Of a stretch of DNA of 64,000 nucleotides, positions 38,601-63,850 are shown in pieces. The translations under genes were made by a program, and so were the position numbers. Origin of the DNA: Pelomyxa schiedti (taxonomy: Eukaryota > Protista > Evosea); assembly GCA_020536535.1 (NCBI GenBank), contig JAHLWZ010000849.1:11311-75310 (forward strand), in the 5' to 3' direction. Numbering within the stretch: position 1 is the first letter of the stretch; each line of letters begins with the position of its first letter. The notes under the pieces were generated by a model. It searched no databases. It was not told the DNA's origin and saw only the letters and a list, made by a program, of their open reading frames with translations.

Positions 38601-41600
38601 TGATAGGGATTTACAAGGCTGTGAGAAAATTTCCGCAGTAGACGAAATGGTGCCAACTGTCTTCTCAACTTCCGGTTCGAGTTCGCATTGTGATGACTGG
38701 ATAGAACTAGTCTGGTCATGTGCACTTGTGAAAAGAAAAACTCCACTATCCACAGAGACTTTTGATTGTGTACTATCAAGCAGACTACTTTCGTCAGTCG
38801 GGATTGATTTGAACTGTGAGAGTTTCAAGAAACCGCCAGAAGTAGTTTCCAAATTGACAGAACTTCCTGACGCCTCCACTTTTGTGTCCTCACCCACAGT
38901 GCTGCACTTTGTGGAGAGAGATTGGGAATGGAGTGTCATTTCATCTATTTTGTTTGTCTTTGAGTCTTCAGACCTTTCATTACTCACTTCCAGTTCATCA
39001 ACCCACCAGTCTTCATCCCCGTCCCCATTCTTACTATGAGTTTCTTCTGTGAGAGTATCTTCTGAACCAACAATCAGGGTTACTTCACTTTCACTTTCAT
39101 CTCCGATATCCATGGATGTGTTCAAACCCAATACAACACTTATGCCTTCAGTAGTGTCTGAATGCTCAGAGACTAGAACTGAATTGTGTTGGGTGGCAGA
39201 GGTACTATCTTTCTCTTTAAGACTTGCAATTGTCTTTATGCTCTCCTTTGTGCTTTGTCTACTGCTTTGCCTGGAAGGATTAGTGACTTGATGACTCGTT
39301 ATGCAATCGGAAAGACTCCCCGAGCTCGTTGTGATTGGAAAATAATGTGACATTGTGCCATTGGTTTCAAGTGTGTCGAGAGCTTCAATTTCTTCAGTTC
39401 CAAAAACACCATCCCATGCTCGAGAGCCAGGAAGAGGCTGGAAGGACTTGGAAGACAGGGTCGATTCAGGCAGAGAACTTGAATTTATGTGAAGAGATTC
39501 CGTTGTGAAGGTCATACTGCTACTTAAATTTTGATCTGAACAACCATCAATATCTTCACCCGAAAATCCCGATGCTGGCCTTTCACATGGGGCCGACATA
39601 CCAGAGGAAATTATTTCCTGTATTGATAGACCCTCGACTTGACGCGCACTGGGATCACCACCAGAGCTCAATGTCGGTAAGGGAAGGGTGCCGAATATAG
39701 AACTGTAGACTTTAGATTTAGAGGAATAGCTTGCATTATCAGCCTCGTAATACGAGAGGGTTCCAACATCGCTGAGTACTGATCCAACTGACACACCTTC
39801 TCCAGCACAATCGTCCTGAGTATCCAACTCCAACTGGTTTTGAACCGTCAATCGTGTTGCCTGGGAACTTGACTTGAAAGAACGGCTGCCATCCATTGAT
39901 TGCAATAAAGCTTCCACAATCGCTTTTACTTCAGAGTTCTTTTTGTCAGAAACACTTTCACTGCATACTGAACTGGTCTGACAGAGTTGATTTCTTTCTA
40001 CACTGGATTTTTCTGGACTATGATCCGCGTGAGTAACCTCTGAGAAAGTTTCATCCATCCCTGGAGTGGGAATAAAATCTGCCCCCTCACTCAACGGCTC
40101 CAAGCCTTCCAATAGGGAATATGTACTTGCAGTTTGGTGTATTGACGACTTGGGAGATGGGAAATTGATTCCTTCAAACGTGGTACCAGTTGCCATTATT
40201 GAACCGCTGGAGGTACTGCTGGAAAGGGAAAGAGGCATAGACAATCCCATGGTTGAGTTGCTTTCTTTACTCCTTTGTAAGGGAATAGAGTTGCTCGCGG
40301 TAGCAGGAATGGATTGTGGTTGATTTCCTGAAAGCCTTTCTGTTTCTAATGAACCGTGAAGAGATTCTCTCTGTTCAGCCACAAAGCTTTGAGAGTTGGA
40401 TTCCACAATATTTTTTGGTACATCAGCCATCTCACCTGCTACATAAGTTTCTTGAGGAATACTATGCTCCGCATTTGCCAAAACATGCACCCCTTCATAG
40501 TCACTCCCTTTGGCTTGCTTGTCATTAGAAATAGCATCAACTCTGCTCTTTGACAAACGGAGTGAAGAACTAACAAAGTAATTGCTTGTTGATGTATCAG
40601 ATTCAATTGAAACAGCACTCTCAAATAATTCTCCTGACTTGCAGACTGAATCTTGCATCGAATTCGAGGTTTTGCCAGTTGGACACAACTGATTTGAACT
40701 TTTTTCCATGGTGAAAAGCGAGTCACACTGAGAATCGCCACTGGGAGTATGTACGTTGCGATTTAAGCTTGAAAGCACGCCAGCGTAAGTGGATATGTCA
40801 GAGGGGGATAAACTGTGCTCAGAAATAACATGGTCACGTGCACTTTGCCTGGAATTTTCAAGTGCTTTTGATGAGTTTCCAGAGGAATGGTGGGACATAA
40901 TATCTTTAGAACTGAAACTGTTGCGAACGCCCGAAATGCTAAGCTTCTTGCTTCTGGGTGAGCATTGCTCTGTTCCCATAGAGTGAGTGAATTCTTCTTT
41001 ACTGGACTCTGCACTTGAATTTATTCCCTTTGGTTCTCTAAGTGCACCTGTCTGATTTAGTGTGCTAGAAGTCCCTAAGCCAGTAGCAGATGACACGGCT
41101 TGAATTGGTATATCAGAAGATACATCAGTGATGGAGATTACTGAAGGAGAGTCATCGGCCCAAATACTTTCTGAGCCACTCTGATCCTCAGTTTCATCAT
41201 CAATTGCCAATATAGCGCTGTCCAGCTCGTCATTCAGGAGATGTTTGTCCACGCTTAACCTCTCTTTTTCCAGTTGCTTCAGTGCCTCCCCAGTGCTGTA
41301 AGTACCACAGACCGATGTGGATTTGGAACCCCCTTCTAGCAGTCCACCCACCGCCCAGTCGGGATTCCACTTTAGGGTTTTTTCGGTTGAGCTTACTGCT
41401 TGGATTTCTCCCACTACAGTTTTCTCACTGGAGTAAGGCTGGTCTTGTTGATGGGAGGTAGACATATTGCTTTCAGTACGCCTGGTGTTGAATTCATCTG
41501 CAACGAACGGGTTGACTTCTATCTGTGGTCCTCCACTGATAGTCAAGGAGGAATCCTGAATGCAGCTCTCAAATTGAGGTTTTTGTGAAGTCTCATGTAT

Positions 41601-44600
41601 GCCTCTGTGTTTTCTGCTGGATTGTTTGCTGGAGAAACTGGCACCTTTGTGTGAACCTCTATTCTCATTTGCAGTGAAACTTGGGTGGGTTGAAAAAACT
41701 TGCTCTTCTGAAGAGTGAAAACTTGCATCAGAAACAGAGCAATTCAAGGAATTCATTGTAGTAGGAAATAGAGATGAGGATAAAGATGCCCCAGAAAAAG
41801 AAGAGTTTCCAATAGCACTCAACTCCACAGGAGACAGGGATTCAGTGTGTATAGACATGTGGTTCCCAGTGTAGGTCCTTACACTGGGATAGTTCGATTC
41901 ATCAGATTTTTCTTTATCCTCAGAGGGTAGTTCCCCATTGTGAATACCATTGATCACTGGGCTCTCACTGGCTGCTTCTACCTCGAGAGGCTTTGAAACA
42001 GAATGTGTATCTGTTCCGTAACTGCCAGTGAGAGACTGCACTAAAAAATGATTAGTTTCTTGGGTGTTTATGCTTGGATCTAAGCAACTGCTTTCATCAC
42101 CCGGGTACCCTGCAATAAAAAGTGGATCCATTGACTCATGGTAGTCATTGCTTTCAACCAACGTGCTACTTACCCAGTTACTCTGAGAAGAAACTTGCTC
42201 CTTTGATTCCAGTATGCCGGCTGTAAACGAAATGGTTGAATCTGGTTGTTTGTTTGTGCCTGAACTTCGAGTTTTCGACTTGCACTGAAAGGAGTCTCCG
42301 TGGCTCCCCAAAGGTAAAATACTTGTTGTGCCTGACTGGGGTATCTCTTGGCTTCCACTTTTATATGACTTGTAGCTAGCCTCATAGTCACTGAGGGGTA
42401 GCTGGGCTGTGACAACATCCTCTTCCTCTTCGAATTCCTCACTAGGCAATGTTCCAGAAGAATTACATGGTTCAGATAGAAAGGGAGATGCTGAACTGCG
42501 ACTGGAATTGTGCAGCATGGCATCAGTTCTTAGCATTTGTTCTACAATCTTAAGTATATTGCTTGCCTCGTTTTCTGTCCCCTGGGTTTTTTCCTTTTCC
42601 TGGTTTTCGCATGCACTTGATGCATTTTGTAACTTTATATCTTGCTGACAACCTAAATCTGCAGTGTCATTTTTATTCTTTGGTAAGGTGTCATCTACAT
42701 CCATTGCACTCAATGAACTCCTGGAGTTGCTGGCTTGTGAAGAACTGCCAGTTTGTGGAAGACAAACGGGTGTGGAAGGGAGACCTTTCAAGCTATTCTC
42801 AAGATAATTCTCACGAGATTTAGTGAAGAGGAGGGAACTTTGTTCTGCTAGATGGGACTCATTTCTTGAAGAGCAGTCAAGTTCTAAAGGAACCTGAGAA
42901 AACAGTGTCCCACTCGATGTTTTTGGCGTGAAGGAGCTCGGGGGATTGGAAAAACAAAGCTCGTTGGCGAGTGACGCAGTTCCAACATTGAAAATGGACT
43001 TTGAAACAACTGTGGAGGTGTTGTACGAGTTGAGTGCATCCTCTTCATCACCAGTATTACTGTGATCTGGAGATTCTACTTTCCCTCTAATACTGTCTTG
43101 TTTCTGTGTATTTCTAGAGGAGTCCAAGTTAGCTTCCACGGTGTTGATGCTTTCAAAAAAGGAAGTGGAGGAAGGTTCTAGACTCCCACAATGGGAAACT
43201 AAATCATCGGTATTGGTTGAATCCTCACAATCGGGAACACTAACAAGAGACTGATAATCACTTCTCTCAAGGCTGGCATAGCTGTTTGTCAACTGGACAT
43301 CAAGAAGGGCTCTTTGAACGTTGCTATCTGGATCGTTGGATGCTTTGGAAGAAACACCTCGTTCTTTTAGATTGGACTTTGTATAAGAGTGAGGTTTGGA
43401 ACTTTCATGTGTATTCATCTGCGATGTCTGATCAAATGGAGAGGAGGCCACAAGATAATTAGTGCTTGTACCCTCTCGTTGACCTTGCATAAATTTCTGT
43501 GTGGTACTCTGGCCAGAACGAATTTCATAAAGGGGTGCGTCCTTCGTTTTATCTGCAGAAGACATGCGGCCCAGTTTGTTTCCACTCCTCGAAGAGGTTT
43601 TACTATGAGTTGATCTATGCTTATGGTGTTTCGTGTTCACGGAGTTTGTAGGACTAAAGTCTTGTCCACTTATACTAGTTTGAAACAGTTCATCTGGGAC
43701 TTCAATAGAGGCTGTTTGAGAGTGCTCATCAAGTGGGTCAACAGTACCAATTAAGTCCCCACTTTCAGAAGGTTCGCTAGAAGCACTGCCACCAGGAGGA
43801 AGAATTGCTTTTGTCTCCATTGATGATGTACTAGAACCATCTGATGAAAGGGGACCAGCACTCCCACTTGTTTCTTTCAGAAGACTGTATGACCTCTCAA
43901 GAGCACTTTCTGCAGCAAGGTCGATAGAATTGTGTATGGTAGTAGAGAAAGTGCTCAGCCTTGCACTGGTACTCAAAACCGAGTTTTGTGCCCTCTCATT
44001 AGCTGTAAAATTACCTGATGCAAATTGGCTCCCATAATCACTTGGTGAGATATTGCTGCTGGAAGCAATATTTGATGTGACACTGGGCTCAAGGGTGCTG
44101 CCAGATCTATCAAAAAAATTAAATTCCCTGGGGGACAGTGATCCATATGATTTTGTCAAGTGCCCATAAGAGTGGCTTGGTTCCAGACTTTCATCTCTGA
44201 ATTGACGAACAGAATCAACGGTGGGTTCAATTTCTTCATCAGGAAAATTTTCCATTTCTGTAACTGAGCCGTGGTTCTTCCCTCCTCTCTCGTCACTAGA
44301 GCCTTTGGAACTAGTTGGTTGAGTGCCAAAACCTTGGTTTGGAGCATTGGGGGTTGGCCTTTTAGCACAGGCACCATTTCCAGCATCATCGTCGTCATCG
44401 TCGGAATGGAATTTGTCTGGTTTGGAATACTCTTCCTCTACGAATTCTATTTGGTCTTCTTCATTGTCTTCTTCATCAAGATCCTCACTCCTTGAGGATT
44501 TGCCTGGTTGTGGTCCCGTGTGTTTTGCACTACTTTTGGCACTACTCTCAATAAAAGATTCTTCAAGAAGAGAAATTTCAGTAACATCGTCCATTAGTCC

Positions 44601-47600
44601 CTTTTCTGCTTGTGAGTCCTCCTCAATACTTGCACAGAAACTGCCAAGAAGGTCTTCACTATCACTCTCATTCAGCTCGGTCATGCCACTACCAATAAGA
44701 TTTGCTGAGTTACCACTTGCACTCTTTGCAGAGGAGCCACGGGCTGAAGAACTGCCACCAATTGCAGCAGTACTATCCCCAGCACCAGGAACACCACAAA
44801 AAGCTTGTGCAGCAGATGCACTGCTTTGCTGTGATGCCCTAGAATTTCTTTTTGACTCCGTGGAGGGATATTTGTTGCCTTTCTTACTGGCTCCAGAACT
44901 GGACTGGCTGCCACTTGCTTTCGAATTTCGTGAAAATTCCTTACTGGAGATTGAATCCTTGTCCTCTGAAGGGGTATTTACGGCGCTATCTTCTTTTGGA
45001 ACGTTCTCAGAACCAGGTTGAAGTGGAGGGAGGTGGCTTTGCAATTTTTGTATCTGTTGCTGCAGTTGTTGCATTTGCTCTTGTAGTTGCTTGGGCGCTA
45101 CCGATTGACTAGGTTGCATGGTGTTCTCTTCATTTCGCTGCACAGGGCTAGGCTGTTCCTCAGTACAAGGAGGAGCTGCCACCTTTTTATAATTAATAAG
45201 AAACTGTGAATTTTCAATACCTTTGTCAAGTCAGACCGTACAGGAACTTGATTTTGTGGTGGGAATTGAATGGGTTTCTGTGAAGAAATTGGCCCATAAT
45301 TCTCCTGTCTGATGGGGGGCAGGGTTTCAGTTTGTGGAACAACAACTAATTGAAGAGTTGGCGATGGCGGTAAAGATGGCACTGTTTGGGGAACTGATTG
45401 AAGGGGAGGTAACTGAGAGAAGTCAGTCTGGGGAACAACCACGAGAAGATGATCGGGCTTCGCTTCATTCCCTTCTTGCAGAGGATATCCCAAAATATTG
45501 GGGTGAGGCTGAATGGCTTGGTCTGAGGGGGGTTGTGGCAAAGAAGATGGCTGCAAATTGTTGAACAAGGAATGAGAAGCTTGTGACTCAGATGATTGAT
45601 TGTCTGAAGCAAGCCTTGGAGTAACGTTATCTTCACTGCTTGAGCTAGAACGTTGTTGAGTTTTCTTATTAGTCTTGTGCTTGTGGTGTATGTGGCCGAA
45701 TCCAGCAGACTCTGTAGCATTCCCAATCTCTGGGTGCCTATCAGTTTCCATTGAATTTGTTTCATCCTGGGGAGTGACTGTATCAACACTACTATTGTGC
45801 TCACGAAGCCGTGTGACCGAGCTTGTCTCCGAATGTTGTGTTGCCTGAATATCATCTTCAACGTCAGTATGATCCATGCCTGCACTGCTGAAAGTTCTTG
45901 GTTTGAAATTAGTGGAAGGATGTGGACTTTTCTCTTGTGGAATCCGGCTATCAAGTCTTCCTTGATAGGCGTTGTTTGGATTCTTACTCGAGTATGATAA
46001 GCTGTCCAACAACTCATCCACCTCATCCCCTAAAGATTTTCCGGTTGCATCCTTTGGGTAATCTCCGTTTTTGTATAGAATGGAATCTGACTTGTCTGAG
46101 CCAAAGTGCGTAAGAGATGGCTCTATTTCGTCTGTACTGGATACAAGTATTTGTGATTGATGGAGCGGGTGAGACTTGTGCCGAGAACGATTTTTCCGCC
46201 GTTGGTTGGTCTTTGCATTTCGTGGCTGTGGCAAATCTTCACCGAAGGCAAGGTTTCCGCTGGGTGTTTCAATTAAATCGATAATTTTACTGACTTCAGC
46301 ACTGACATCGGATTCAATTGGTGAAAGCACTTTGCTCTGCTGGGTTTTAGGAGATTTGACGTTTCCTTGAGGTTGAGGGGGAGAGGCCTCTTGGGTTGGG
46401 CCAACCTTTTTCATGGTGAGTGCATAGGTAATAAGCTGAAAGATACTTGTTGAATTGCCTGAAGCTCTTTCAGAACTTTTACAGCTTCATGTAACCCAAA
46501 CTGAGAGTCGGGTTTGCTCACTATATGAATTAAGGAACAGGAATATTATTTTGAGTGAAACCTTCTTTGGAACACTCCATGTGAGCCACTCTATCTGTAA
46601 CCTGAGTCAAATCTTTTTGTAAAACGGAAAGAGTCTGGTGTATGTTGGTATTTGTGTCTGACATTTGCTGTGACAACTTCGTAATCTACTGAGAGTAAGA
46701 AATTTATTTGCCCATTTCAGAATTGGATTCACTTGTTCTGATCTGGAAGTATTGTACGCATTCTGCGCGGAAAGACCGGAGGCAATACTAGCATTGAGCT
46801 CGTGGATAGTGCTAATTACTACCATCACAAGAGAAGACAAAGAGGAAGAAACAAACTTTCTATGAGATTCAATACTTTTAGAGTGTGAAGAACAAAGCTC
46901 CCGCAGAACAGAAATATCGGCTCTTATTGCAGGTAGTTCTGCCTGTATTTTGGAGTGTATCTGTTGAGATACTACCTCCCTGTAAGAAGTTAGTTAGACT
47001 AAGAGTAACACAGGGCACAATTTACATGGCACTTCGCGATTTTTCTTCAGAAAAGGCACATTGTTGGTGGAGAGAATCCAAGTCCTTTTTCAGGGTACTT
47101 ATTTCATCAAGAATTTTGGTATGCAGCTTATTTATGGCCTTATTGCCCCTTGTTTGGTTAAGTTTAATGCATGATTGTCTCACCTACAAGTTCAGAGCAG
47201 TAAGCGCATCTTCATGCTGTTTAACTGCATAAGAGTGTTCAGCCACAGAATCTTGGAGAGACTTAATACAGCTGCATTGCGCTTTTAGAGACTCAACTTG
47301 TCTGAAATATATTAGAGTTGATACTGGGGTTTTTTCGTACAGTTCCAACGATTTAAGGTTATCTCGTTGAGATGCTAGAGAGTTGGCAGAAGAAAGCTGC
47401 GTTATGGCATCACTTAGGGCCTGTACTTGCTGATTGGCAACAGGTGGATTTGTTGAAAGTGGTGTCTGAAGGCTTCTCACTAAAGCGACTTCTCTGGAAC
47501 TATCATTAGCTAATATAAAACGGGAGACCTACCCTCGTAAGTCCTGTAGCTGTGAAGTGAGTGTCTGAATTAATGGTTGCTTGGCATCAAGTGATTGACA

Positions 47601-51548: not shown

Positions 51549-53663
51549 ATGGCCGCGCAACCTCCGAGGCAGCCCCCCCTGCGCCCGCCGGTGAACAGCG
51601 GGGTGGTCGGCAGCGACCCCAGCTCGATGTCGCTGTTCCCGGCGGTGCCGCTGGACCGCGTCGCGAGCCCGCCCCCGCCGGGCCCCGCGCCCCCGCCCTC
51701 CCTCATGCAGCGAGAGAAGGAGCGCGAGAAGGAGAGGGAGAAGGAGAGGGAACGGGAGGAGAGAAGGGAGAGGGAGGCGGCCAAGGAGAGGGAGAGGGAG
51801 CGAGAAAGGGCGGACAAGGCGGAAAGGGAAAGGGAGAGGGAGGCGGCCAAGGAGAGGGAGAGGGAGCGAGAAAGGGCGGAGAAGGCCGAAAGGAGGCAGC
51901 ACCGCGACGGTAAGGACAGTGACAAGGACAAGACAGGAGTAAGTGACAACAAATCCAAGACCGACCACAAACACGGACATGGCGGCGGCAGCAGCGGCGG
52001 CGGCGGCGGCAGCACCAAACATAGTAGTAGTAGCAATAGCAGCAGCCAGAGGAACAGTGACAGCGGTTATTCCACCGCTGTTACTAATACATCCTCGTAT
52101 ACCTCGCATTCCCAGCCCCGCAGCAGCAGCAGTAGCAGTAGCAGCAGCAGTACCGCAGCGAGAATCCCCGGCGCCCAACCCGCCCACTCCCACCCACTAG
52201 AGCCTGATACTACTCACTCAGGCTCAAGCAGCAAGCGGGGTGCTTCTTCTTCATCATCAACCTCTGGAGGGGGCAGTAGAACTACGCAGGCGACGGGAAG
52301 CGGCGTGGGGCCACTGAACTTGGCATCGGCCCCTCCACAGGAGTTCCTGGAGTCTGTGCATAGGGAAGTTTGGCGTGATATTGCAACGATGTTGGCGGAA
52401 GAGGGAGGGGAGGAATTGGCAGTGAAGCTGCAGGACAAGATTAGGATTAAGCTGGATGCAATCAGGCAAGCCTACGTTTTGGCGCCAGAAGTGGTCCGTG
52501 AGGTGAGGTCAACTTCCGCGCCTTATTCGCGGAGAGCTGCTGGAAATGCTATCATTTATGATCTTCTAGACAGCGAAGCACAGAATGTCGACAAGGGAGT
52601 GGAGGATTTGAGAAATTGGGTGGCGAGGCACCAGCAGGAAGAGGAGAGGCACCTCCGACAGAAGGAATTAGAGGAGAAAACTATAAAAGACTTGGAGGAA
52701 AGGCTGGCACAGGCCAAGCTTCGACTAGCTGAAGAGAAAAAGCTTTGCGAGGACTTCAAGATGAAAAGAGTCGAAGCAGAGGCAATGGTACATGTACAAT
52801 CGGCAAAAGCTGCCCTCCTAAGAGCAGACCTAGCGCCTACCCTTACTGCACTGAAAACCGCACTTGACGAACGCGGTTCCATTGAGACCAAGGCTAGAGC
52901 CAAGTCTCTCACGGAATTCTCTGTACCTGATATCGGAATTCTTCTACGTGAACTGGGCTTGGTCAAGCATGTACAGGAGTTTTCCCGCACTGAGACTGAT
53001 GGGCACGTTTTAGACCTTATGGTCCGGGACGATATGTGCAGGGAGAACGGCGTTACTGAGCTTAATGAACGAAAGGCACTCTCCCATGCAGTTTTTCTTA
53101 TAAAATCTACAGGAAAAATTCGCGCACCACCTCCTATGGATGTAAGCGGAAGCGGATTTGGCGTGGACAACCCGGTTCTGCAGCTTCCTCACTTTTCTCC
53201 CCAGCAGCTCGTGGCTTGGCTGGAAAACCGTGATCAAGCTGATCAAACGAGAGCACACGCCAGCAAATTCCGCGATATACCGGGCTTTGCCTTCCTCCAC
53301 CTCAACATGAAGGACCTCGACGAGATCATCCCTGGTGTTCCCAGCGTCACAGTCAAAATTCACTTCCAGGACCTCATTGACAAATCCCGGCAGAGAATCA
53401 TGGATGCCTACCTGAATGTCCCCGATAACCTAGCCGCCGCCAATGTTTCCCCTCAGTGGCTGTGTTCCCTCACTGGTAACATAATGGAGGTACCGGAAGT
53501 AGCCAAGGATGGATTTGTCTATGAAAGAGGAGTCACTGCCACACTCACACAAAGTCCCATCACACTACAACCTTGGAAAGAGACCCCCTCCTGCCTGCCA
53601 TGGACCAGCACAATATTGAAAACCCTTCTCGAGAACTGGAAAGCCGAAAACTCCTACTCATGA
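51549..53663 (+). CDS. Intronless low-complexity/coiled-coil-SAM-SAM-U-box-like protein (paralogue 1)
   Basis: SAM1 'FSVPDIGILLRELGLVKHVQEFSRTETDGHVL'. SAM2 'FSPQQLVAWLE...IPGFAFLHLNMKDL'. U-box 'WLCSLTGNIMEVPEVAKDGFVYER..SPITLQP..LKTLLENW'. Confidence 0.8.
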   Translation: MAAQPPRQPPLRPPVNSGVVGSDPSSMSLFPAVPLDRVASPPPPGPAPPPSLMQREKEREKEREKEREREERREREAAKERERERERADKAEREREREAAKERERERERAEKAERRQHRDGKDSDKDKTGVSDNKSKTDHKHGHGGGSSGGGGGSTKHSSSSNSSSQRNSDSGYSTAVTNTSSYTSHSQPRSSSSSSSSSSTAARIPGAQPAHSHPLEPDTTHSGSSSKRGASSSSSTSGGGSRTTQATGSGVGPLNLASAPPQEFLESVHREVWRDIATMLAEEGGEELAVKLQDKIRIKLDAIRQAYVLAPEVVREVRSTSAPYSRRAAGNAIIYDLLDSEAQNVDKGVEDLRNWVARHQQEEERHLRQKELEEKTIKDLEERLAQAKLRLAEEKKLCEDFKMKRVEAEAMVHVQSAKAALLRADLAPTLTALKTALDERGSIETKARAKSLTEFSVPDIGILLRELGLVKHVQEFSRTETDGHVLDLMVRDDMCRENGVTELNERKALSHAVFLIKSTGKIRAPPPMDVSGSGFGVDNPVLQLPHFSPQQLVAWLENRDQADQTRAHASKFRDIPGFAFLHLNMKDLDEIIPGVPSVTVKIHFQDLIDKSRQRIMDAYLNVPDNLAAANVSPQWLCSLTGNIMEVPEVAKDGFVYERGVTATLTQSPITLQPWKETPSCLPWTSTILKTLLENWKAENSYS
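51764..51893 (+). repeat. 66-bp tandem duplication in an ER/EK-rich charged helix
   Basis: 'EREAAKERERERERA(D/E)KAER' occurs twice with a 66-nt period. Confidence 0.85.
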
Positions 53664-54059
53664 AAAATCCGGGGGTGCGTACTCCTCATTCTCCTTTCTT
53701 TGTTAAACAAACTTTTGTAGAAGAACCGTGCGAAGCTTCGATCTCATAGTGAATCTGGTTCGCGTGCACCCTTTTGGATGGAGCCAGAAAGTACCAGCGC
53801 ATGGTACTTTCCAATAGATGCACATCTGAACACCCTGAACCATTGTCTCTGTGCCAGCCATAAATCACTTGGTTGATACTTCGCCAAACGCTACCGGAAA
53901 ACCAAACAACTTTTTTTTATTGGACTTGTTTAGTTTCTGTTCCACATAGGTGGAATGTATTGTGTTTTATGCATAGCTAGTATCTCCATTGTTTCAGCCA
54001 CGTGATGTATTCCGGGCAACTGAGTTGTGTTAGAGAGATTTTGGAAAAGGAGAAACACA

Positions 54060-56449
54060 CTAAGTGGGAAATGGAGTTGGTGTTGCCCCAAGAGAAATCA
54101 ATAATTCTTTTGAAACATCGTCATTACGAACTGCAGCATAGTGGTATGCAGTGAACCCATTACCATCCTTAGCCTCTATATCCACATCCAGTGATGCCTC
54201 CTGGATAAATTTGAGACAAGAAACAAAAAGAGACCAACAAACCTGAATATCGGATAAATTGGATCTAAGTACCGCTGTGTGCAAATCTGTCCTTGGAAAT
54301 TGGCTGACATTGAAATGACGTTGTCCTAAAAGCTTAGCAGTGTCCCAAAGTGTTCGACCATAGCCTATTTAACAGTGAAAGGAAAGTGTAATATTTTGTG
54401 CTTCATACCATCCATTTGCATGCGTGAATACCTACAAGCCACCAAACTGTCAAAGGCTCTTTGGTGGTGTTTTGGCTCTTGGACAAGATAATCAACGCAG
54501 GCATAAAATAAACTCCGGATACATACTGCCAGAAGGTTATAGGGTATAAATGAGGAGTATACATATTGGAGGAGGTGCACAGCACGGAATGTTTAGGAAC
54601 TCTGATTGGTCTTCCTCAACAGGAATGTGCACGCATGTGGAGCACAAAGCTGTAGTTTCCACGTGGCTTAGATGTGTTGCTTCTTCTGAAGTTGAAATAT
54701 TGGAATACCTGATATGCAGACGAATATACTTGGCACCTGTAAACCTTGGTTTGTGGCAAAGGGCGCATTTGAAGCCAATATTTCTCCATGTGTCTAAAGA
54801 TGATTTGTCCAAAAAAACAGAACTCTCAAAGACCTGGTGGAGGCAGATAGAAAAAAGCACTGAGGTGATGGGTTGGTTCTAGAACCCACTGACATACACC
54901 AATGAATAAAGAACAAGGAAGGGCCTTGAAGACAGATAGTCTACCTAGATACTGTGGGTTAGGGGGTGGGGTACGTTTCACAAACCTAGCCGCTGGTGCT
55001 TTATTGAGCAAAAAATCCGAGCTTCTTTCACTGACTGCTCATAAGCTCTAATGACAGTGTTCCAAATATCAAGTGCCATTTCAGGTTGCCCGCTTCTAAG
55101 CGCTACTAATAAACTAGATGGATGGATAGCAGGTTTTAATGCGTCAAGCACTGCTTGGCATAAAGATCGTCTGTTATGAAGCAGCGCTTGCTGCAGACAT
55201 TCTGTGGCTTGGCTTGGAGACAAATTCAAAAATTGAAACATTTTTTTGTAATCATCCACTGAAACACAACCCGGAAATTGTAATAGTAATGTTGCTCTTG
55301 CATTTTCTGGAAGCTTGGCGCCCAAACTGAGTAAATCTAATACAACTTGAGGATTTGAAGCTGCAGAGATAAGTGGGTGTTCTCCTTTGGAATCTAGAGT
55401 GTTTATATCAACTCCATACTTTTGCACAAGGTGCAGTAAAATATCCCTTGAATCAGAGGTACAAGCAAGATGGAAAAGTTCATCCAGTTGTTGATGAGGT
55501 AAATCAGGGCAAGCGTTATAAAGAATATCAAATAACACAGTGCTCTTCTGCAAAACAGCGGAGGCAATTGGAGTTGTTCCCTTGTTTGTTGGAACCCACA
55601 AGGTGCTTGTTCCCTGTGAAGTTGATAGCAATCGTGTGATTACTGGGATATGCAAGCCCTGACAGGCAACAAAGAGTGGTGTTTTTCCGTCAATATTTTT
55701 TATTGTAATGTGATATGGATCCACATGATTCTGGGGTGCCACATTCCCATGTTGAAATGGATGAGGTACTGCAGAAAGAAGAATGTCAACAATTGAGAGG
55801 TTTCCATCTCTGCAAGCAATAAAAATAGCTGTACAACAACTGGAATCTTTCTGTGAAGTGTCCACAAGCAAGCCCATACACGAGTCAGGTTTGAGGTTTC
55901 CCCCACATCTGGTCCCAAAAAATACGTGATTTCAAACTCCATAATCACGCGGGTGTGCATGGATTGTTTAATTTCTGTAAGTAGTAACTACATGCTAGAA
56001 ACACACCCACAAGTTGCACCCCACGTAATCAAGTGCCTGACAATATTGTCTTTTCCTGTTCGGCAAGCAAGAAGCAGAGGCGTAAATCCGGGACCTGAGT
56101 CGTTTGCTACCTGACGAGCCACGCTAAGCGGAGAAGAGGAAGAACCAGACGAAGACGCGACCGCCGCGTCGAGAACAGCTGATACGACAGGAAGGCTTCC
56201 GGAAGAGATCGCAGCGTGTAGTGGAGTGTTGTGCGTATGCGGGTCACGGAAACTAGTCACGAGATCTGACAGTGAAACAGCACTACTAGTAGGAGGCGTA
56301 GCCGCAGATACACCGCCACCTTTCGACAGATTCGGTACCTGCTGCTGCAATGCCAACACCTCGTTGATTAACACTTTGACAGTGTCGATGTCGCCATTTG
56401 CGCACGCTTCGTAGAATCGTCCGGGCAACGAATCCTTCCTGTCACTCAT
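54060..56449 (-). CDS. Ankyrin-repeat protein with a degenerate ZZ-like zinc finger; multi-exon
   Basis: Ankyrin repeats 'NTPLHAAISSG', 'GFTPLLLACRTG', 'GKTPLFVACQG', 'GFTAYHYAAVR'. ZZ-like 'FKCALCHKPRFTGAKY...LCSTC'. Confidence 0.8.
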
Positions 56450-56709
56450 TTCGCTTTTTTTTGAAGGGAGATAACAGTGATGGCTCCTGATGGCTCGGTA
56501 ATTTCCTGATTCCGGAACCCCACAGAGGAGAGATGTCGGAGTAGAATGTTTGGAAGCCTGAATCCGTTTTCGGGGATTCAGTTCTGGGCTGGACTCACTT
56601 GGGACCCAAGTAATTTTAGGACAGGCCCAACTTGATTATCCGCAACAACGTGTCATTGCCTGTTGGTGTTTATCCACCCCAAAAAAGACAGCAGCCGCAC
56701 AAGGAACGA

Positions 56710-58674
56710 ATGACGTACCGGCCGTTCAAGCCCCTGATGGTGCATCCCGCCGCGGCCCCGATTTCCATCGTCCCCACCACCGCGGCTCTCCACCCCTCGC
56801 CCCACGTCGTCGTCGCCGCGCATCCAATTCCCTGCCCCGCGGCCTCCACATCGCCCCCGGGCGCCGCGCCTCTGTACGCCTCGCCGCACCCCTCCCCCGT
56901 CCCCTCTCCCTCGCCGTCCCCACCCCCTCCCCACGCCACCACGCCCCCGCCCAACATCGTCACGGCTCGCACCAACACCCCGTCGCCGTCGAACACTCCC
57001 GGCCTCAGCACGTCCGGCAGCGGGGGTGTTGTTGGCTGCGGCGGCGGCGGCGGCGGCGGGTGCGCGTACATCTCGGCCCCATCGGGCTCGGGCACGGGCA
57101 CGGGAACGGGGTCGGGGTCGGGATCGGCAACTGGATCGTCGGGATTCGGGTGCGGATCGGGCTCGGGCATCGGCTTGGGCTCGGGCGCAGCAGCTTCTGG
57201 CTCGGAACCGAGCTCCCCTTCCAGTTCCGGACACGGCTTTCCCTTTGGCCTTCCCTTGCATTCCTCTGGGGGGGGCGTCAATCATGGTTCCGGAACTGTT
57301 ACCATTACTGGGGGAACTGGGACTAGTACAGGGGCGGGGCGAAGCTGCTCTTCACCTCCCCCGACGGCGAAATTGGCAATTGCTAGACCGCTGTCACAAA
57401 TACTGCCGCTGGTGGAACAGGAAATTTCGGCTCTTTCTGAACCAACCAGCCCGCTGGATGAGCAAAGGCGCCAGGTGGAGTGTCGGAAACAATCGCTATC
57501 TGGCCACATTTTCGACCCTTTGCGCCACCCTTCGCTGTCTCCCTCCTTTAAGGCTGCAGGAAATGCCGCTGTGGTTGACATTTTGCAAGTGCACCACACG
57601 CAACTGCAGAGTGAACAATTAGTCCACGAGAAGAAGTCTGTACAGCTGGCCTCGGAAGAAGAAGAGCTTGAGAGAAGGGCCACGGCCACGGCAAACGAGA
57701 TGGAGAGGCTTAGGTTACTTCTTGCGCAAACTACGGCAGCGCATGAACAGCTCGTTTCTCAACGAGAACAAGCTGAGAAAATGAAAACGCAGGAAAAAGC
57801 ACTTGCGGCCTTAAAGAAGGAGAAGGCGATAGTATTGGAGCAAGCCAGAGTATCAGCAATGAAAGAGATGGAGGAGAACATTAAGCTACTTGATAGCCTT
57901 CACGCAAAAGCCAGGACCCACCTGCTACAGAACCTCACTTGTGAGGATGTATGCACTTTACTTCTCGAAATCAAACTGCACCATCACGTACAAAGCTTCG
58001 CCAGGAATGCGATAGATGGAATAATGCTCTACCACATAACAAGTTGTGTCACAGAACTCCCATTACTTGGGGTCAGTGATATTGTCGACCAAAAGATGCT
58101 TTGCCATGCGTGCTTTACGGTGATGGTGGCAGGGCGTGTTATTGCTCCACCTCTCCTAGAAGGTCGCGATTGTGCCACCACGAACAACGACCTCAATTTC
58201 GCCACCTTTTCTCAAAAGGAGGTTATTTCATGGCTTGGGAAACAGAGAGATATTGGTGTGCAAACCAAACAACTCGAAGGGTTACCGGGGTTTGTCATTT
58301 TGCACCTCAGTGCCACTGAGCTCCACAGCATGAAAGTTGGCAATCCCATCCAGTGTTCACTCCTAGCAGAAAGAATCGAGGCTATTAGGAGCCTCATCAT
58401 GGATGCATACACTGCGTCCGCAGCGACGTTGGAATTATCCGGCACCACCGAAATACCCCCGGGCTCTCTTACATGCTCCAAAACCGGCAAGCTTATGACA
58501 TCGCCTGTGATTGAGCGCGATGGATTTGTGTATGAACAAGGTGTAGTTACAAAGGAAACCAAAGTGTCTCCTCTCACAAATCAAGAATGGGGCACAAGTG
58601 ACAAGTTCCTTCCACACCAAAGTGAGACTTGGAAGGCAAGGATAGGGAAGTGGATGGAGAACAACAATTGCTAG
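56710..58674 (+). CDS. Intronless low-complexity/coiled-coil-SAM-SAM-U-box-like protein (paralogue 2)
   Basis: SAM1 'LTCEDVCTLLLEIKLHHHVQSFARNAIDGIML'. SAM2 'FSQKEVISWLG..LPGFVILHLSATEL'. U-box 'LTCSKTGKLMTSPVIERDGFVYEQ..SPLTNQE'. It is collinear with paralogue 1 (shared 'IMDAY', 'DGFVYE'). Confidence 0.8.
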   Translation: MTYRPFKPLMVHPAAAPISIVPTTAALHPSPHVVVAAHPIPCPAASTSPPGAAPLYASPHPSPVPSPSPSPPPPHATTPPPNIVTARTNTPSPSNTPGLSTSGSGGVVGCGGGGGGGCAYISAPSGSGTGTGTGSGSGSATGSSGFGCGSGSGIGLGSGAAASGSEPSSPSSSGHGFPFGLPLHSSGGGVNHGSGTVTITGGTGTSTGAGRSCSSPPPTAKLAIARPLSQILPLVEQEISALSEPTSPLDEQRRQVECRKQSLSGHIFDPLRHPSLSPSFKAAGNAAVVDILQVHHTQLQSEQLVHEKKSVQLASEEEELERRATATANEMERLRLLLAQTTAAHEQLVSQREQAEKMKTQEKALAALKKEKAIVLEQARVSAMKEMEENIKLLDSLHAKARTHLLQNLTCEDVCTLLLEIKLHHHVQSFARNAIDGIMLYHITSCVTELPLLGVSDIVDQKMLCHACFTVMVAGRVIAPPLLEGRDCATTNNDLNFATFSQKEVISWLGKQRDIGVQTKQLEGLPGFVILHLSATELHSMKVGNPIQCSLLAERIEAIRSLIMDAYTASAATLELSGTTEIPPGSLTCSKTGKLMTSPVIERDGFVYEQGVVTKETKVSPLTNQEWGTSDKFLPHQSETWKARIGKWMENNNC

Positions 58675-58829
58675 GTGGTAGTGCATGTACATTCTGTTGT
58701 TTACAACAAGAAGCTTGTTTTGTTTTGATTACCGAAAAGGTTCTCCAAAAATTAGGAGATAACAGATGTGGGGTGTTCAATGAACAATACGAAGAAAAGG
58801 ACAACGAACAAAAAAAAAAAAGTTGATAC

Positions 58830-60041
58830 ATGTCTGAGTACGATTTCTTGTTCAAGTTCATTGTGATTGGAGATGCAGCGACAGGCAAGTCGTGTCTATT
58901 GCACAGATTCATCGAGGTTAGCATGTGTTTAGATTGTTGAAAATTGTTTCTTTTTTTTTCTTTAACTGACTGACTCCTTGCCCTGCAGAACAAATGTATA
59001 GAGCTCTTTCTTTATTTCGTTATTATTTTTTTGGTTTGTGGGAGGTTATCGATCTCACATATGTTCTATTTGTGATTCGATTGATGTCAAGTCAACAGAG
59101 AGTCCCAGCATACCATTGGTACGGGAACTTATTATGTACTTTGGTTTCAAATTCTCACTCAGTGCTCTTAGGTGTTGAGTTCGGTGCTAAAGTTGTGGAT
59201 GTAGGAGGCAAAAAAATCAAACTACAAATTTGGGTAATTAGTACTGCATTCAATAAACAACGTCTCATTTCCTCACATAAAACAGGACACAGCAGGCCAG
59301 GAACGCTTTAGGCACCTTCTCATTCTACTTCTGGTTTCCTCTTATTTAGTCTGTACAGATCAGTCACCCGCAGTTACTATAAAGGGGCTGCTGGTGCATT
59401 GTTAGTGTGCATTCCATTCTCTTTTATCATCCTTAGGCAAACAACCTCTAGGTTTATGATGTCACGAGGTATTGATACAAACTCGTACTGTCTATTCTAA
59501 CGATGCTTCTTGGGAACCATATTTTTCCTCACTACATTAAATACACAGTCGGGACAGTTACAACAATATATCCAGCTGGCTTAATGACGCCCGGTCTTTA
59601 TCCAATACCGACATCGTCATCATGCTCGTTGGAAACAAAACGGACCGCGCTGATGTATCCCCTTCTAGCCATTTTATCTGGAATTTACTTGCTTCTAGAG
59701 AGATGTGCAATTTCTTGAAGCAAGCCGCTTTAGTGAAGAGCACGGTATTTGTTTCCGTGTTGAGCATAAGTATCTCATTTCTACAGGTCTGATTTTTGTG
59801 GAAACGAGTGCCCTTACCGGTGATGGTGTGGAAGAAGTATTTTTGAAATGCGGTAGAACTATCCTCAGTAAAATAAACGACGGTAAGCCATACCCGGCTC
59901 CTCTTTATTACCCGGTTCCTATCTATCGATTACCATTCAACAGGCAAAATTGATCCTCTGAAATTGTCTGGAGTCCAGAAGGGCACTGTAACACCACTTC
60001 CACCCACACCCCCACCTAAGAACAATTCGGACTGTTGTTAA
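58830..60041 (+). CDS. RAB4: Rab4 GTPase, 11 exons
   Basis: Spliced product '[32 protein letters not shown]...TIGVEFG...[30 protein letters not shown]...GNKTD...[16 protein letters not shown]...DCC'. It has Rab4-type N-terminal and alpha5 signatures and a CC prenylation motif. Confidence 0.92.
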
Positions 60042-60096
60042 TTTCTTTTCTTTTTTTTGTCCCATAGTTCGCTTCACCGTTGTACACTTTGTAGTT

Positions 60097-61887
60097 TCAA
60101 GCAAACAAGAGTCTTCTCAGCAAATCTGTGGGAGAATCGACCAATTCTGAGCAGAGCAACTGTTTGTCTATCAACCATTGCATTGCGTCGTAATCGCATC
60201 CCTTCTTTATCAACTCCACAAGTACACCATCAATTTTGACGTCCTCGCGATAAACCTTTGAGGACTTCTCACCAGGGGGGGTCTGGTCACTGATTTTTCG
60301 AGCTCCGAAAAATTGTAGCAGCCCAGTGGCAACTTCATAGGTTGGTTTTCGAAGTACACGGCGTCGCGAGACGTCGTCTGGCAGTGACGCAATTTCTTTT
60401 TGAGTGAGCCCAAAGAGGTCCTCGTATAACTTGTGAATGTGCTTGGAAGTTGGCATCAACGCAGCAGCAAGCAAGTCTGTCAAAAGTCGCTCAATCTCGG
60501 GGTTGAATTCAGCAGGATGGGCCACCAACAGCTGGAAGATGTGAGAATTGTTGTGCGAACACACATTTTTGAGGATCGTTTTCACAAAGTCGGAGGGCAG
60601 TTTGTCGCTGGTGAGCCCCTTCCATTCGTTGTACAACTCTTTGAAAACGGAAAGAGCTTCAGTCGTGTTGAACTTTGCAACGCTGCACAGCATACAGGGC
60701 AGGCACTTCAGGAATTTATCGTCTCTTTGCCACAACCCAGGGCTCAGCAGGGTTCTGAGAATGCCCCATTGCCCATGAGCTGCGGCAGACTCCGCGATCA
60801 CAGCTTGCGTGAACGGAACCCAATTGTATTTTTGAAATTCCACATCTGATGGAAGCAAAGTCCAAAGGGACGTCTTCACAAAAGCTTCGCGCAGCATATT
60901 GCAAATTTCAGTGAAGTATTGTTGATTTCTGCACGCAGCACTCAATAAAAGGGTGCTCAAGGACAAGTTGAACGGGAAGCTTCCTCTCACGGATGTCTTG
61001 AGCAATAAGAGTTGGCAAATTTCGTGATTGCCTCCTGCTGCAGCGTTATGCAGGCTATTCATGAAGGGCTCTCTTGGGTCGTAATCATCAAATATCAGGA
61101 ACTTTTTAGACTTCTCAAAGATGACCTCAACCAGAGGAAGGGCCCCTGCGTAGCTTGCTATTTCAAGAAGTTCTCTGCGATAGTTGTGGGTTGTCATCAG
61201 GAGGCCAGTGTTGATGAGCTGTAGCAACCGGGTCAGTTTAGATTCAAACCTTGCCTTGTCTGCTTGATCTGTTGCACGTGACGCAGACCTCCAGGCAAGT
61301 GCAATGCCCATGCAGATGGCAACGTACAGGTTTCTGTTGCGACCGTCCTGTAGAAGCCTGGTTGGAAGCAACTCGTTCTGGTCACTGCTGTTGAATAACA
61401 CTCTGAACGGTGAATCTGACACCCATTCTTGAAGGAAATCAAACTGGCAATGTGAAATAGCAAAGTACAAGGCACCTGAGGTGTGATAGATGACTTAGGG
61501 CGGACTCAAATCTCACTTTACAAAAAAAAAAAAGGGAAAAAGAAAACCTGGAACGACGGCAGGAAAGAAACCAAACTGCTTTATGTAATCGCGAAGCAGA
61601 TTTCGTGCAGTGACAATGGAACCATGGCTGGCACAAGCGTTCATTATGTTCACGTTGCACTCAAGCCTCTTCTTAAGCCAACTGAGTGACAGTTTGGTCC
61701 CAAATGGGTAGAAGATATCCGCCATGATGGTGGCAAACCATATGTCAGGCTCGTCGTAGTGTTGGAGGTGCAAGGCAAGTGCTTTTTTGTTCCAACACAC
61801 CGAATTTCTTTTCCTTTTGCAACAGCGCAATACCGGCGCTGGTGATGCGGCCAGAGTTGGTGGTAATAAGGGTAGAACACTTGCCAT
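60097..61887 (-). CDS. Degenerate ankyrin-repeat/alpha-helical protein
   Basis: 457-aa ORF with 'LEIASYAGALPLVEVI', 'LHNAAAGGNHEICQLLL', 'AAAHGQWGILRTLL'. The upstream exon has 'ACASHGSIVTARNLL'. Confidence 0.6.
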
Positions 61888-61984: not shown

Positions 61985-62156
61985 ATCCCACAATTCGGCA
62001 CACCGAGAAAAAACTGGTTTCTTAAGAAAACGCTCGGGGAGGAAACTTTGGATCCACCACGGCGAAGGAGTGTGACTTGTAGCGGCAACGTTGGTCCTGG
62101 GTCGGGTTCTGACTTCGTGGTGGTGTTCCATTCAAAATCACCCCCCCTTTTTTTTT
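61985..62156 (+). repeat. Local repeat element, copy A (~170 bp, CpG-retaining)
   Basis: Shares sequence with 62427-62534 (inverted), 62547-62597 (direct, 5' part) and 63681-63850 (inverted). Confidence 0.9.
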
Positions 62157-62426
62157 GTGGGGTGGTGTTGAGGAACTTGTTGGCTCTGGTGTCCACACCA
62201 CCAGGAGGGCTGTAGTGCAGAGTGGAGGTTAAAGAAAGTAGACCCTTAATCTTTGTTGGTTGGTTGGTGTTAAAGGGTTGGGTCTTGATGGTTGTCACAT
62301 CAGGAGATGGTTGTTCTTCCAGAGATCTCTTATGCATAATTTTACTGTTATCAAAGACTGAAAAATATAAATTTATTGGGGGGCACCCCAATAACAAGGT
62401 TGTTGTAGCAAAAAATCGGGGGTTTT

Positions 62427-62597
62427 TTTTGAATGGAACACCACCACAAAGTCAGAACCTGACCCAGGACCAACATTGCCACTACATGTGGTGGATCCAA
62501 AGTTTCCTCCCCAAGTGTTTTCTTAATTGTGGGAGGCCTGCTTCTTATCCCACAATCCAGTGCACCGGGAAAAAACTGGTTTTTTAAGAAGAAGCTT
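62427..62597. repeat. Repeat copies B (inverted, internally deleted, CpG-erased) and B' (direct, 5' part), back to back
   Basis: The reverse complement of 62427-62526 aligns to 62022-62137 with a 16-nt gap. 62547-62597 aligns to 61985-62034. Confidence 0.9.
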
Positions 62598-63050
62598 GGA
62601 GTCTCTTTCCCGGAGCCAGCACAAAGGATCCCAGTCCTTGCCAGCTGCAGTCAACTTCTTTTCTTCTCCATTTTGCCCAGGAGGCAAAACATGGTGGCAA
62701 AATGACCAAAACAGAGATACCAGAAGGACCAAACTCAAATCGAAGAACTGTGCAAAGAAGAAGATCACAAATGTCCAGACTATCAAGAAAAGGTGAGACA
62801 ACTGAAGCTTCTGAGCCTTCAAAGAGCTCCACAAAGAAATCACAGAGAAGTAAACAAGATCCTTCCTACAAAGCTGCCAAGACAGCGAAGAAAGAACGGC
62901 AGAAACAAATACAAGAACAAGAGCAACGATGCGATCAGTTCCCAAGCTGAAATTGCCTCCTTGGCAAAATGGAGAAGAAAAGAAGTTGACTGCAGCTGGC
63001 AAGGACTGGGATCCTTTGTGCTAGCTCTGGGAAAGAGACTCCGAGCTTCT
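62590..63050. repeat. Long inverted repeat (fold-back): 98-bp arms, 265-bp spacer
   Basis: 62590-62687 is the reverse complement of 62953-63050 with 4 mismatches. Confidence 0.95.
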
Positions 63051-63680
63051 GTGGGCTCGAGAATAAGTCCCACAGAGGAAGAAAACGAGTGAGAGTGAAG
63101 AGAATAAAGGGTTCTCTTGTTTGTTTGGTTGTTGTAAGGGGATAAAAAGGGAGTGTGTAAAATCTTGCAGAGCCGTTGTGTGATTGGGTTAAAAGGCCAC
63201 GATGTTCAAATGGACAAGTGTGCATGTAATCAAAACCACCTGCCACGTTGTTGTTGCTGTATTTGTGCACCCAGCTGCACTGTGTGCTGATCATTACCTT
63301 TGCTGTCTCATTCTGGTAAAGAATGGTCCAGATTCGGCTCAGTCCTCAGTCTCTCCACGTGTACTTTGTGGAAGTACACACTGGTACTGGCCCTCATCAT
63401 CCAGTTTCAATGCCCAGTGGCACCAGCTTTAATACTGCCACACCAAATTCATAGTGTGAGCCAGCACCAAATACTCTACCACAGCTGCTGTACAAAGTTG
63501 TAGGCACTGAACTAGCACCACTCTTCCATTTCTGCTGCAAACTCACCTAGTGTAGGAACTAGCCAGACCTTCACCTGTGTGTAAAATATACTACCACACC
63601 CAGCACCCACAGAATCACTTTTCAGCACCAGCAAATGGACTGCACCACAATGCCGTAATGTGGGACTGCCACTTCAACCC

Positions 63681-63850
63681 AAAAAAAAGGGGGGTAATTT
63701 TGAATGGAACACCACAACGAAGTCAGAACCTGACCCAGGACTAATGTCGCCGCTACAAGTCACACTCCTTCCCAGTGATTGCTCCGGAAATTTAACAGCT
63801 AGCTTCGTCTTCAAAAACCAGTTTTTTCCCTGTGCGCCGGATTGTGGGAT
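63681..63850 (-). repeat. Repeat element copy C
   Basis: 'gaatggaacaccacaacgaagtcagaacctgacccaggac...ctacaagtcacactcctt' and 'aaaccagttttttccc...ttgtgggat' are inverted matches to copy A. Confidence 0.85.

Follow-up and report, generated by a model that had tools for sequence, protein, structure and literature searches.

The window, a stretch of 64,000 nucleotides of the Pelomyxa schiedti contig JAHLWZ010000849.1 (positions 11,311 to 75,310), holds toward its right end a low-copy element within a nest of dead transposons. The assembly, made from seven single cells (52.4 Mb in 5337 scaffolds; PMC8887013), comprises 52,367,397 bases in 5337 contigs and is about 82% complete; in a genome search we found 21 matches to the repeat, a unit of ~170 bp, on eight contigs. 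Each match is of type A or type C, with 82% similarity between the types. The features of the locus, in window coordinates, are as follows:

60097..61470, minus strand: ORF with ankyrin repeats, duplicated along with the element (C901, C518); no CpG excess, used as internal control
61986..62154, plus strand: copy A, A-type terminal inverted repeat at the outer (left) end; all 7 ancestral CpGs kept
62155..62409, no strand: interior segment 1, nearly CpG-free; common to C901, C2670, C518 and C1181
62410..62534, minus strand: copy B, inner A-type repeat; 0 CpG left, deletions of 28 and 16 nt
62535..62547, no strand: 13-nt spacer between back-to-back repeat ends; near-identical junction on C901 and (inverted) C1181
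62548..62622, plus strand: copy B', an inner repeat of C type, truncated; 3 of its 4 CpGs lost
62590..62687, plus strand: 98-nt inverted repeat, left arm; arms match at 96%, and CpG transitions account for 2 of the 4 mismatches
62953..63050, minus strand: right arm of the 98-nt inverted repeat
63044..63357, plus strand: high-copy element of 314 bp that lies nested in the interior; 173 candidate copies at about 90% identity
63381..63680, no strand: interior segment 2; 6 of 12 CpG cytosine sites with transitions among 5 copies
63681..63849, minus strand: copy C, outer (right) terminal inverted repeat, C-type; 6 of 7 scorable CpGs kept

On three contigs (C2670, C3965 and C518), 0.2-0.7 kb of variable DNA lies between an A copy and a C copy in inverted orientation, while the window and C901 share the layout A...B|B'...C, with the 13-nt spacer between the back-to-back ends; the junction recurs, inverted, on C1181. 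From this anatomy, we conclude that the repeat forms the inverted termini of a DNA element that is non-autonomous, foldback/MITE-like, and variable and rearranged in its interior, and that the window and C901 carry this element in a rearranged tandem form. Like a MITE or TIR DNA transposon, the element has terminal inverted repeats without coding capacity; no target-site duplication was seen at the copies inspected. A DDE_3 remnant lies behind the copy on C413, and relatives of the remnant are on contigs without the ~170-bp repeat. We did not adopt a Tc1/mariner identity, for which the evidence was this weak remnant at a single locus, nor DIRS-type ends, Mutator or piggyBac, which were weighed from the anatomy and backed by no coding sequence or target duplication.

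The ankyrin gene upstream of the element was duplicated together with it (98% identity on C849, C901 and C518), and thus serves as an internal control for substitution counts. The block of ankyrin gene and element sits at the ends of several long contigs (C849, C901, C518, C1181) that have downstream sequence in common, possibly as a segmental or subtelomeric duplication. Farther to the left, SAM(/U-box) and ankyrin ORFs stand in tandem pairs (51549-61470), and an uninterrupted ORF of 3170 aa (35670-45182) has no Pfam match and a CpG observed/expected ratio (o/e) of 0.45, lower than the window average. The nested 314-bp element, whose other copies start with TG, appears solo-LTR-like and is probably an LTR. 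Its copies are sometimes paired on one contig, 2.8-4.4 kb apart and in the same orientation; in the window copy, a short microhomology with the inverted-repeat arm marks the point at which the 5' end has been replaced, and a relative is present in an RNA run.

The original prediction was that, apart from one 16-nt gap, copy A (62022-62137) is distinguished from copy B (62427-62526, reverse complement) by changes at seven CpGs (four to TG, three to CA) and by nothing else. Our realignment reproduced each of these differences and found no other in 84 counted sites; about 27% of the aligned sites could give a CpG-type transition, so that 7 of 7 has P = 9e-5. The CpG variants described among B', C and A were likewise borne out, as was the claim that CpG transitions make up half of the four mismatches in the adjacent inverted repeat. 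The further claim that all seven CpGs of A had been changed in B is correct as a statement of difference, but not of loss: at 62103-62104, only A and its closest sister have CG, whereas 15 other copies have CA, and thus this CpG was probably gained in A. Another CpG, near 62031, occurs in the A lineage alone. The change at the edge of the deletion is supported, since CA is also present at this site in the orthologous copy of B on C901.

Copy B reaches 62534, and its second deletion, of 28 nt, takes out two more CpGs. B also has a diagnostic base in common with A, beside the A-lineage CpG at 62031, a sign that one arm may recently have been copied from, or converted by, the other. Between B and its sister on C901 there are four non-CpG differences; thus, the background is low, but not zero. 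The concern that copy B might be an assembly artefact is unlikely to be justified, because C901 has the same A-B|B'-C layout and a read-derived contig from run X2 crosses the joint of the 28-nt deletion in B, although the read runs come from the source sample of the assembly and are not independent support for B.

Copies were compared by column-wise counts, with substitutions polarised by majority, in a sample of one repeat family on eight contigs (about 200 kb of sequence). Tabulated by sequence context, this family shows a CpG-transition excess that is restricted to the repeat and extends beyond the A/B pair. Transitions occurred at 21 of 47 CpG cytosine sites in the element, compared to 3/86 CHG, 9/254 CHH and 18/425 A/T sites (CG versus CHH, p = 7e-13), while the neighbouring ankyrin gene had transitions at only 1 of 128 CG and 5 of 491 CHH sites (CpG sites, element versus gene, p = 3e-13). 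Correspondingly, CpG o/e was 0.13-0.26 in element interiors, whereas the gene and the remainder of the window had 0.60-0.69. CAG/CTG was not depleted in the interiors, and there was no CHG footprint in the element at the few CHG sites available. All four 5' neighbours are represented among the changes in B, and thus these changes have no special 5' context. In the window copy of the 314-bp element, all four listed substitutions against the family majority are CpG losses. An unrelated duplicate pair (C968/C2077) had a milder CpG excess (12 of 21 transitions, p = 0.004), possibly due to low-level methylation or decay outside transposons.

Loss of CpGs depended upon position within the element. 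Inner copies had lost 22 of 40 ancestral CpGs and edge copies 8 of 88 (p = 5e-8; the copies are not fully independent), although one inner copy, on C1181, had lost none. Between the interiors of the window and C901, six CpGs were changed on opposite strands, seven on one side only and six in both, with nine other transitions in 724 sites. Each of the first six is TG in one interior and CA in the other; thus, these are independent events on opposite strands. From this comparison, the CpG rate is ~70x that of background transitions (range 23-237), and the likelihood for A versus B disfavours ratios of 12 or less.

A PF00145 profile search of the genome, with spliced genes searched exon by exon, yielded four genes, all of the DNMT1 family (C1048, C151, C829, C902): a DNMT1 and three others. 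The genome thus encodes C5 methyltransferases beyond Dnmt2, as the defence that had been proposed for this protist would lead one to expect. The gene on C1048 is an intact canonical DNMT1 (CXXC, BAH, and motifs I, IV, VI, VIII, IX and X), closest to the animal and Mastigamoeba enzymes. Its CXXC zinc finger lies at L036:4437-4874 (E 6e-15); a CXXC on DNMT1 is described as a holozoan addition (PMC12344493), and Pfam detected none in Mastigamoeba DNMT1. There are five SRA loci. No RID-like, DNMT2, DNMT3 or DNMT5 gene was among the PF00145 matches, and genome profile searches gave no match to APOBEC_N or, with two positive controls, to TDG/MUG; each of these blanks is weak in a genome 82% complete. 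DNMT2 is also not listed for Mastigamoeba, and is the only such enzyme of Entamoeba, in the table of PMC12344493. SET and SRA matches lay on different contigs, with no linkage found that would indicate a KYP-like SRA-SET gene; a Pre-SET search was blank, but its control also gave no signal.

Thus, the element has undergone a CpG-only, two-strand, stepwise decay that is concentrated in its interiors, in a genome with intact methyltransferase genes. We think it probable, judging from the substitution pattern, that this decay reflects gradual deamination of 5mC in methylated transposon interiors, with methylation maintained by DNMT1, T:G repair weak and the edges unmethylated. Methylation of CpGs in the interior would most likely be the work of the intact DNMT1, together with SRA-domain readers; 5mC would deaminate to T, the T:G mismatch would be poorly repaired, and CpGs would become TpG or CpA stepwise on either strand. 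Edge copies, including A beside the upstream region of the ankyrin gene, would remain largely unmethylated and keep their CpGs, which may be why B is stripped while A is intact; the effect of position is itself observed, and methylation is its presumed cause. The zero background between A and B could then come from a very high CpG:background ratio together with recent copying or conversion between the arms. In mammals, the CpG ratio is roughly 10x. Since the ratio of ~70x is well above this value, and the A-versus-B likelihood speaks against 12 or less, plain chemistry would need help, which missing repair, slow division or enzyme-promoted deamination might provide. Most likely, 5mC is lost here in the ordinary way but unusually fast, in a lineage whose set of enzymes is itself unusual.

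We considered that a methyltransferase might instead promote mutation directly, such that a DNMT1 or CMT-like enzyme actively raises C-to-T change at repeat targets during mitotic growth. The very high CpG:background ratio and the four DNMT1-family genes agree with this idea, and Zymoseptoria Dim2, which raises C-to-T at CpA, is a precedent for mitotic mutagenesis (PMC8016269). However, sequence alone cannot separate this process from passive deamination, and the changes in B have no special 5' context; we regard direct promotion as unlikely, if the least unlikely of the alternatives weighed here. A true RIP-like process, in which duplicated DNA is sensed by homology and mutagenised in one round, would account for a copy B that is near-saturated with nothing else altered, in an inverted pair that is closely linked. 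This part of the original prediction is not supported: A keeps 7 of 7 CpGs at 250 bp from its twin, the sister of A on C901 is likewise untouched, the 1.8-kb ankyrin duplication is spared at 98% identity, and sister B copies are hit on different strands at the same CpGs, which argues for stepwise change. Moreover, RID is confined to fungi (PMC12344493), and we found neither a RID/DNMT4-like gene among the PF00145 matches nor an APOBEC gene. Because the partner and the gene duplication are spared and no RID gene turned up in the 82% complete genome, we consider RIP very improbable. What stands of the proposed repeat-targeted CpG methylation or mutagenesis defence is the CpG hypermutation restricted to repeats and the existence of the machinery genes, but not its RIP-like character.

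A CpG-preferring cytosine deaminase that acts without methylation, on single-stranded or hairpin DNA, has, we think, marginally worse prospects than RIP. The region is rich in foldbacks, but both arms of a hairpin should then suffer, interiors without hairpins are CpG-poor as well, and the one deaminase family searched (APOBEC_N) had no match in this 82% complete genome. Least probable of all is an artefact of single-cell amplification or assembly, through deamination during lysis or a chimeric inversion. The assembly does derive from amplified DNA of seven single cells, the entire stretch is covered by no single read contig, and copy B is uncovered in run X1; nevertheless, C901 has the same layout, sister copies have changes in common, allele differences recur across three runs, and non-CpG cytosines and the ankyrin gene are unaffected. 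Thus, we retain the reading of gradual 5mC deamination in methylated interiors.

The other three methyltransferase genes (C151, C829, C902) are intron-bearing, with intact catalytic motifs, a single BAH and a chromodomain inserted between motifs I and IV (for C829, Chromo E 1.4e-4, below the curated cut-off). The C829 exon has its best match in maize ZMET2 (E 1e-35, compared to 1e-22 for the best DNMT1/MET1-type chain). In a structure model, residues 1-55 of this exon adopt a chromodomain fold, with an alignment that starts at ZMET2 residue 440, and the model of the Mastigamoeba orthologue also matches ZMET2 best (TM 0.56 versus 0.39), although both models are biased because they were built on CMT-rich alignments. 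The aromatic residues at both putative histone-reading cages are kept in Mastigamoeba and, among the three Pelomyxa genes, in C829 alone; C151 and C902 have a degenerate chromo cage. In a tree built on the insert-free catalytic domain, from which long-branch, short and redundant rows were excluded and in which no labelled haptophyte CMT or DIM-2 was present, the three genes form one clade with Mastigamoeba and two metagenomic proteins (support 100/98). This clade lies beside the green CMT (100/99), with joint support of 92/85, under the threshold used; grouping with Mastigamoeba DNMT1 was rejected (p-AU 0.0003), as was nesting within streptophyte CMT. The metagenomic members come from two eukaryotes (L065, L066). 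One metagenomic protein, P0005, has two chromodomains in the insert, and a neighbouring ARPC3 gene in L066 has named matches that are amoebozoan, at only 51-58% identity.

One Pelomyxa protein carries the automatic GenBank name 'CMT-type DNA-methyltransferase', but in a survey from 2025 the only lineages scored for CMT are green plants and algae, haptophytes and Telonema, with no amoebozoan among them and the four Mastigamoeba genes filed as DNMT1 (PMC12344493). We found no description of the amoebal clade in the literature searched. The chromomethylase-like clade is the newer and more surprising part of this analysis, and nothing ties it to the CpG footprint on the repeat; as a source of a CHG footprint there, these genes were set aside, given neither CHG excess nor CAG/CTG depletion at the few sites available. 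A more ambitious scenario, which we advance as a long shot, is that Archamoebae keep a chromomethylase lineage of common origin with plant CMT, either ancient or acquired by early transfer. In Pelomyxa, whose PF00145 matches included neither DNMT3 nor DNMT5, such enzymes would in this scenario recognise methylated H3K9 and initiate methylation in the interiors of transposons at CpG instead of CHG sites; the resulting mitotic loss of CpGs, at ~70x background, would act as a RID-free defence.

Indirectly, these results suggest that Archamoebae, which are relatives of Entamoeba, may methylate transposons at CpG, in which case the Dnmt2-only state of Entamoeba would be a loss within the group; the rate of decay looks unusually high, and the chromomethylase-like genes are relevant to the time of origin and the first targets of enzymes with a chromodomain insert. 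The case for novelty had been made against the model amoebozoans, and Dictyostelium and Entamoeba indeed lack DNMT1 in the table of PMC12344493. That argument is nevertheless weak, since DNMT1 is widespread in Amoebozoa (listed for five, including Mastigamoeba with 4 copies), and Acanthamoeba is already known to have CpG methylation, with enrichment on young transposons (PMC12344493). With CpG decay also known in basidiomycetes, the footprint is a further case of a known phenomenon.

The resemblance to Acanthamoeba castellanii is close, in that both are amoebozoans with DNMT1, a CpG-only signal, enrichment on repeats and genes mostly spared. In contrast to Pelomyxa, where we found no DNMT3, Acanthamoeba has DNMT3 and no CMT is scored for it, and its methylation was measured and favours retroelements, whereas the evidence in Pelomyxa is mutational and concerns a DNA-type repeat (PMC12344493). 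Basidiomycete transposon copies likewise show CpG-biased C-to-T decay with a DNMT1-class gene (Masc2/DNMT1) and no RID, and the decay is read there as methylation followed by deamination (PMC4352252; PMC3318451). Pelomyxa differs by having no TpCpG preference in B, by belonging to a different supergroup and by its extra CMT-like genes.

Ascomycete RIP (RID, DIM-2) also produces C-to-T transitions in repeats, but RIP occurs mostly at CpA, requires RID and acts on both duplicates, whereas the change in Pelomyxa is at CpG only, spares the partner and is stepwise. Finally, the plant chromomethylases (ZMET2/CMT3, CMT2) are like the three Pelomyxa genes in having one BAH and a chromodomain between motifs I and IV, and ZMET2 is the best match in both sequence and fold. 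The Pelomyxa genes differ in forming a separate clade that is not nested in streptophyte CMT (AU p = 0.016) and in having degenerate chromo cages in two of three paralogues, with no CHG footprint on the repeat and no SRA-SET (KYP-like) linkage found in the genome.
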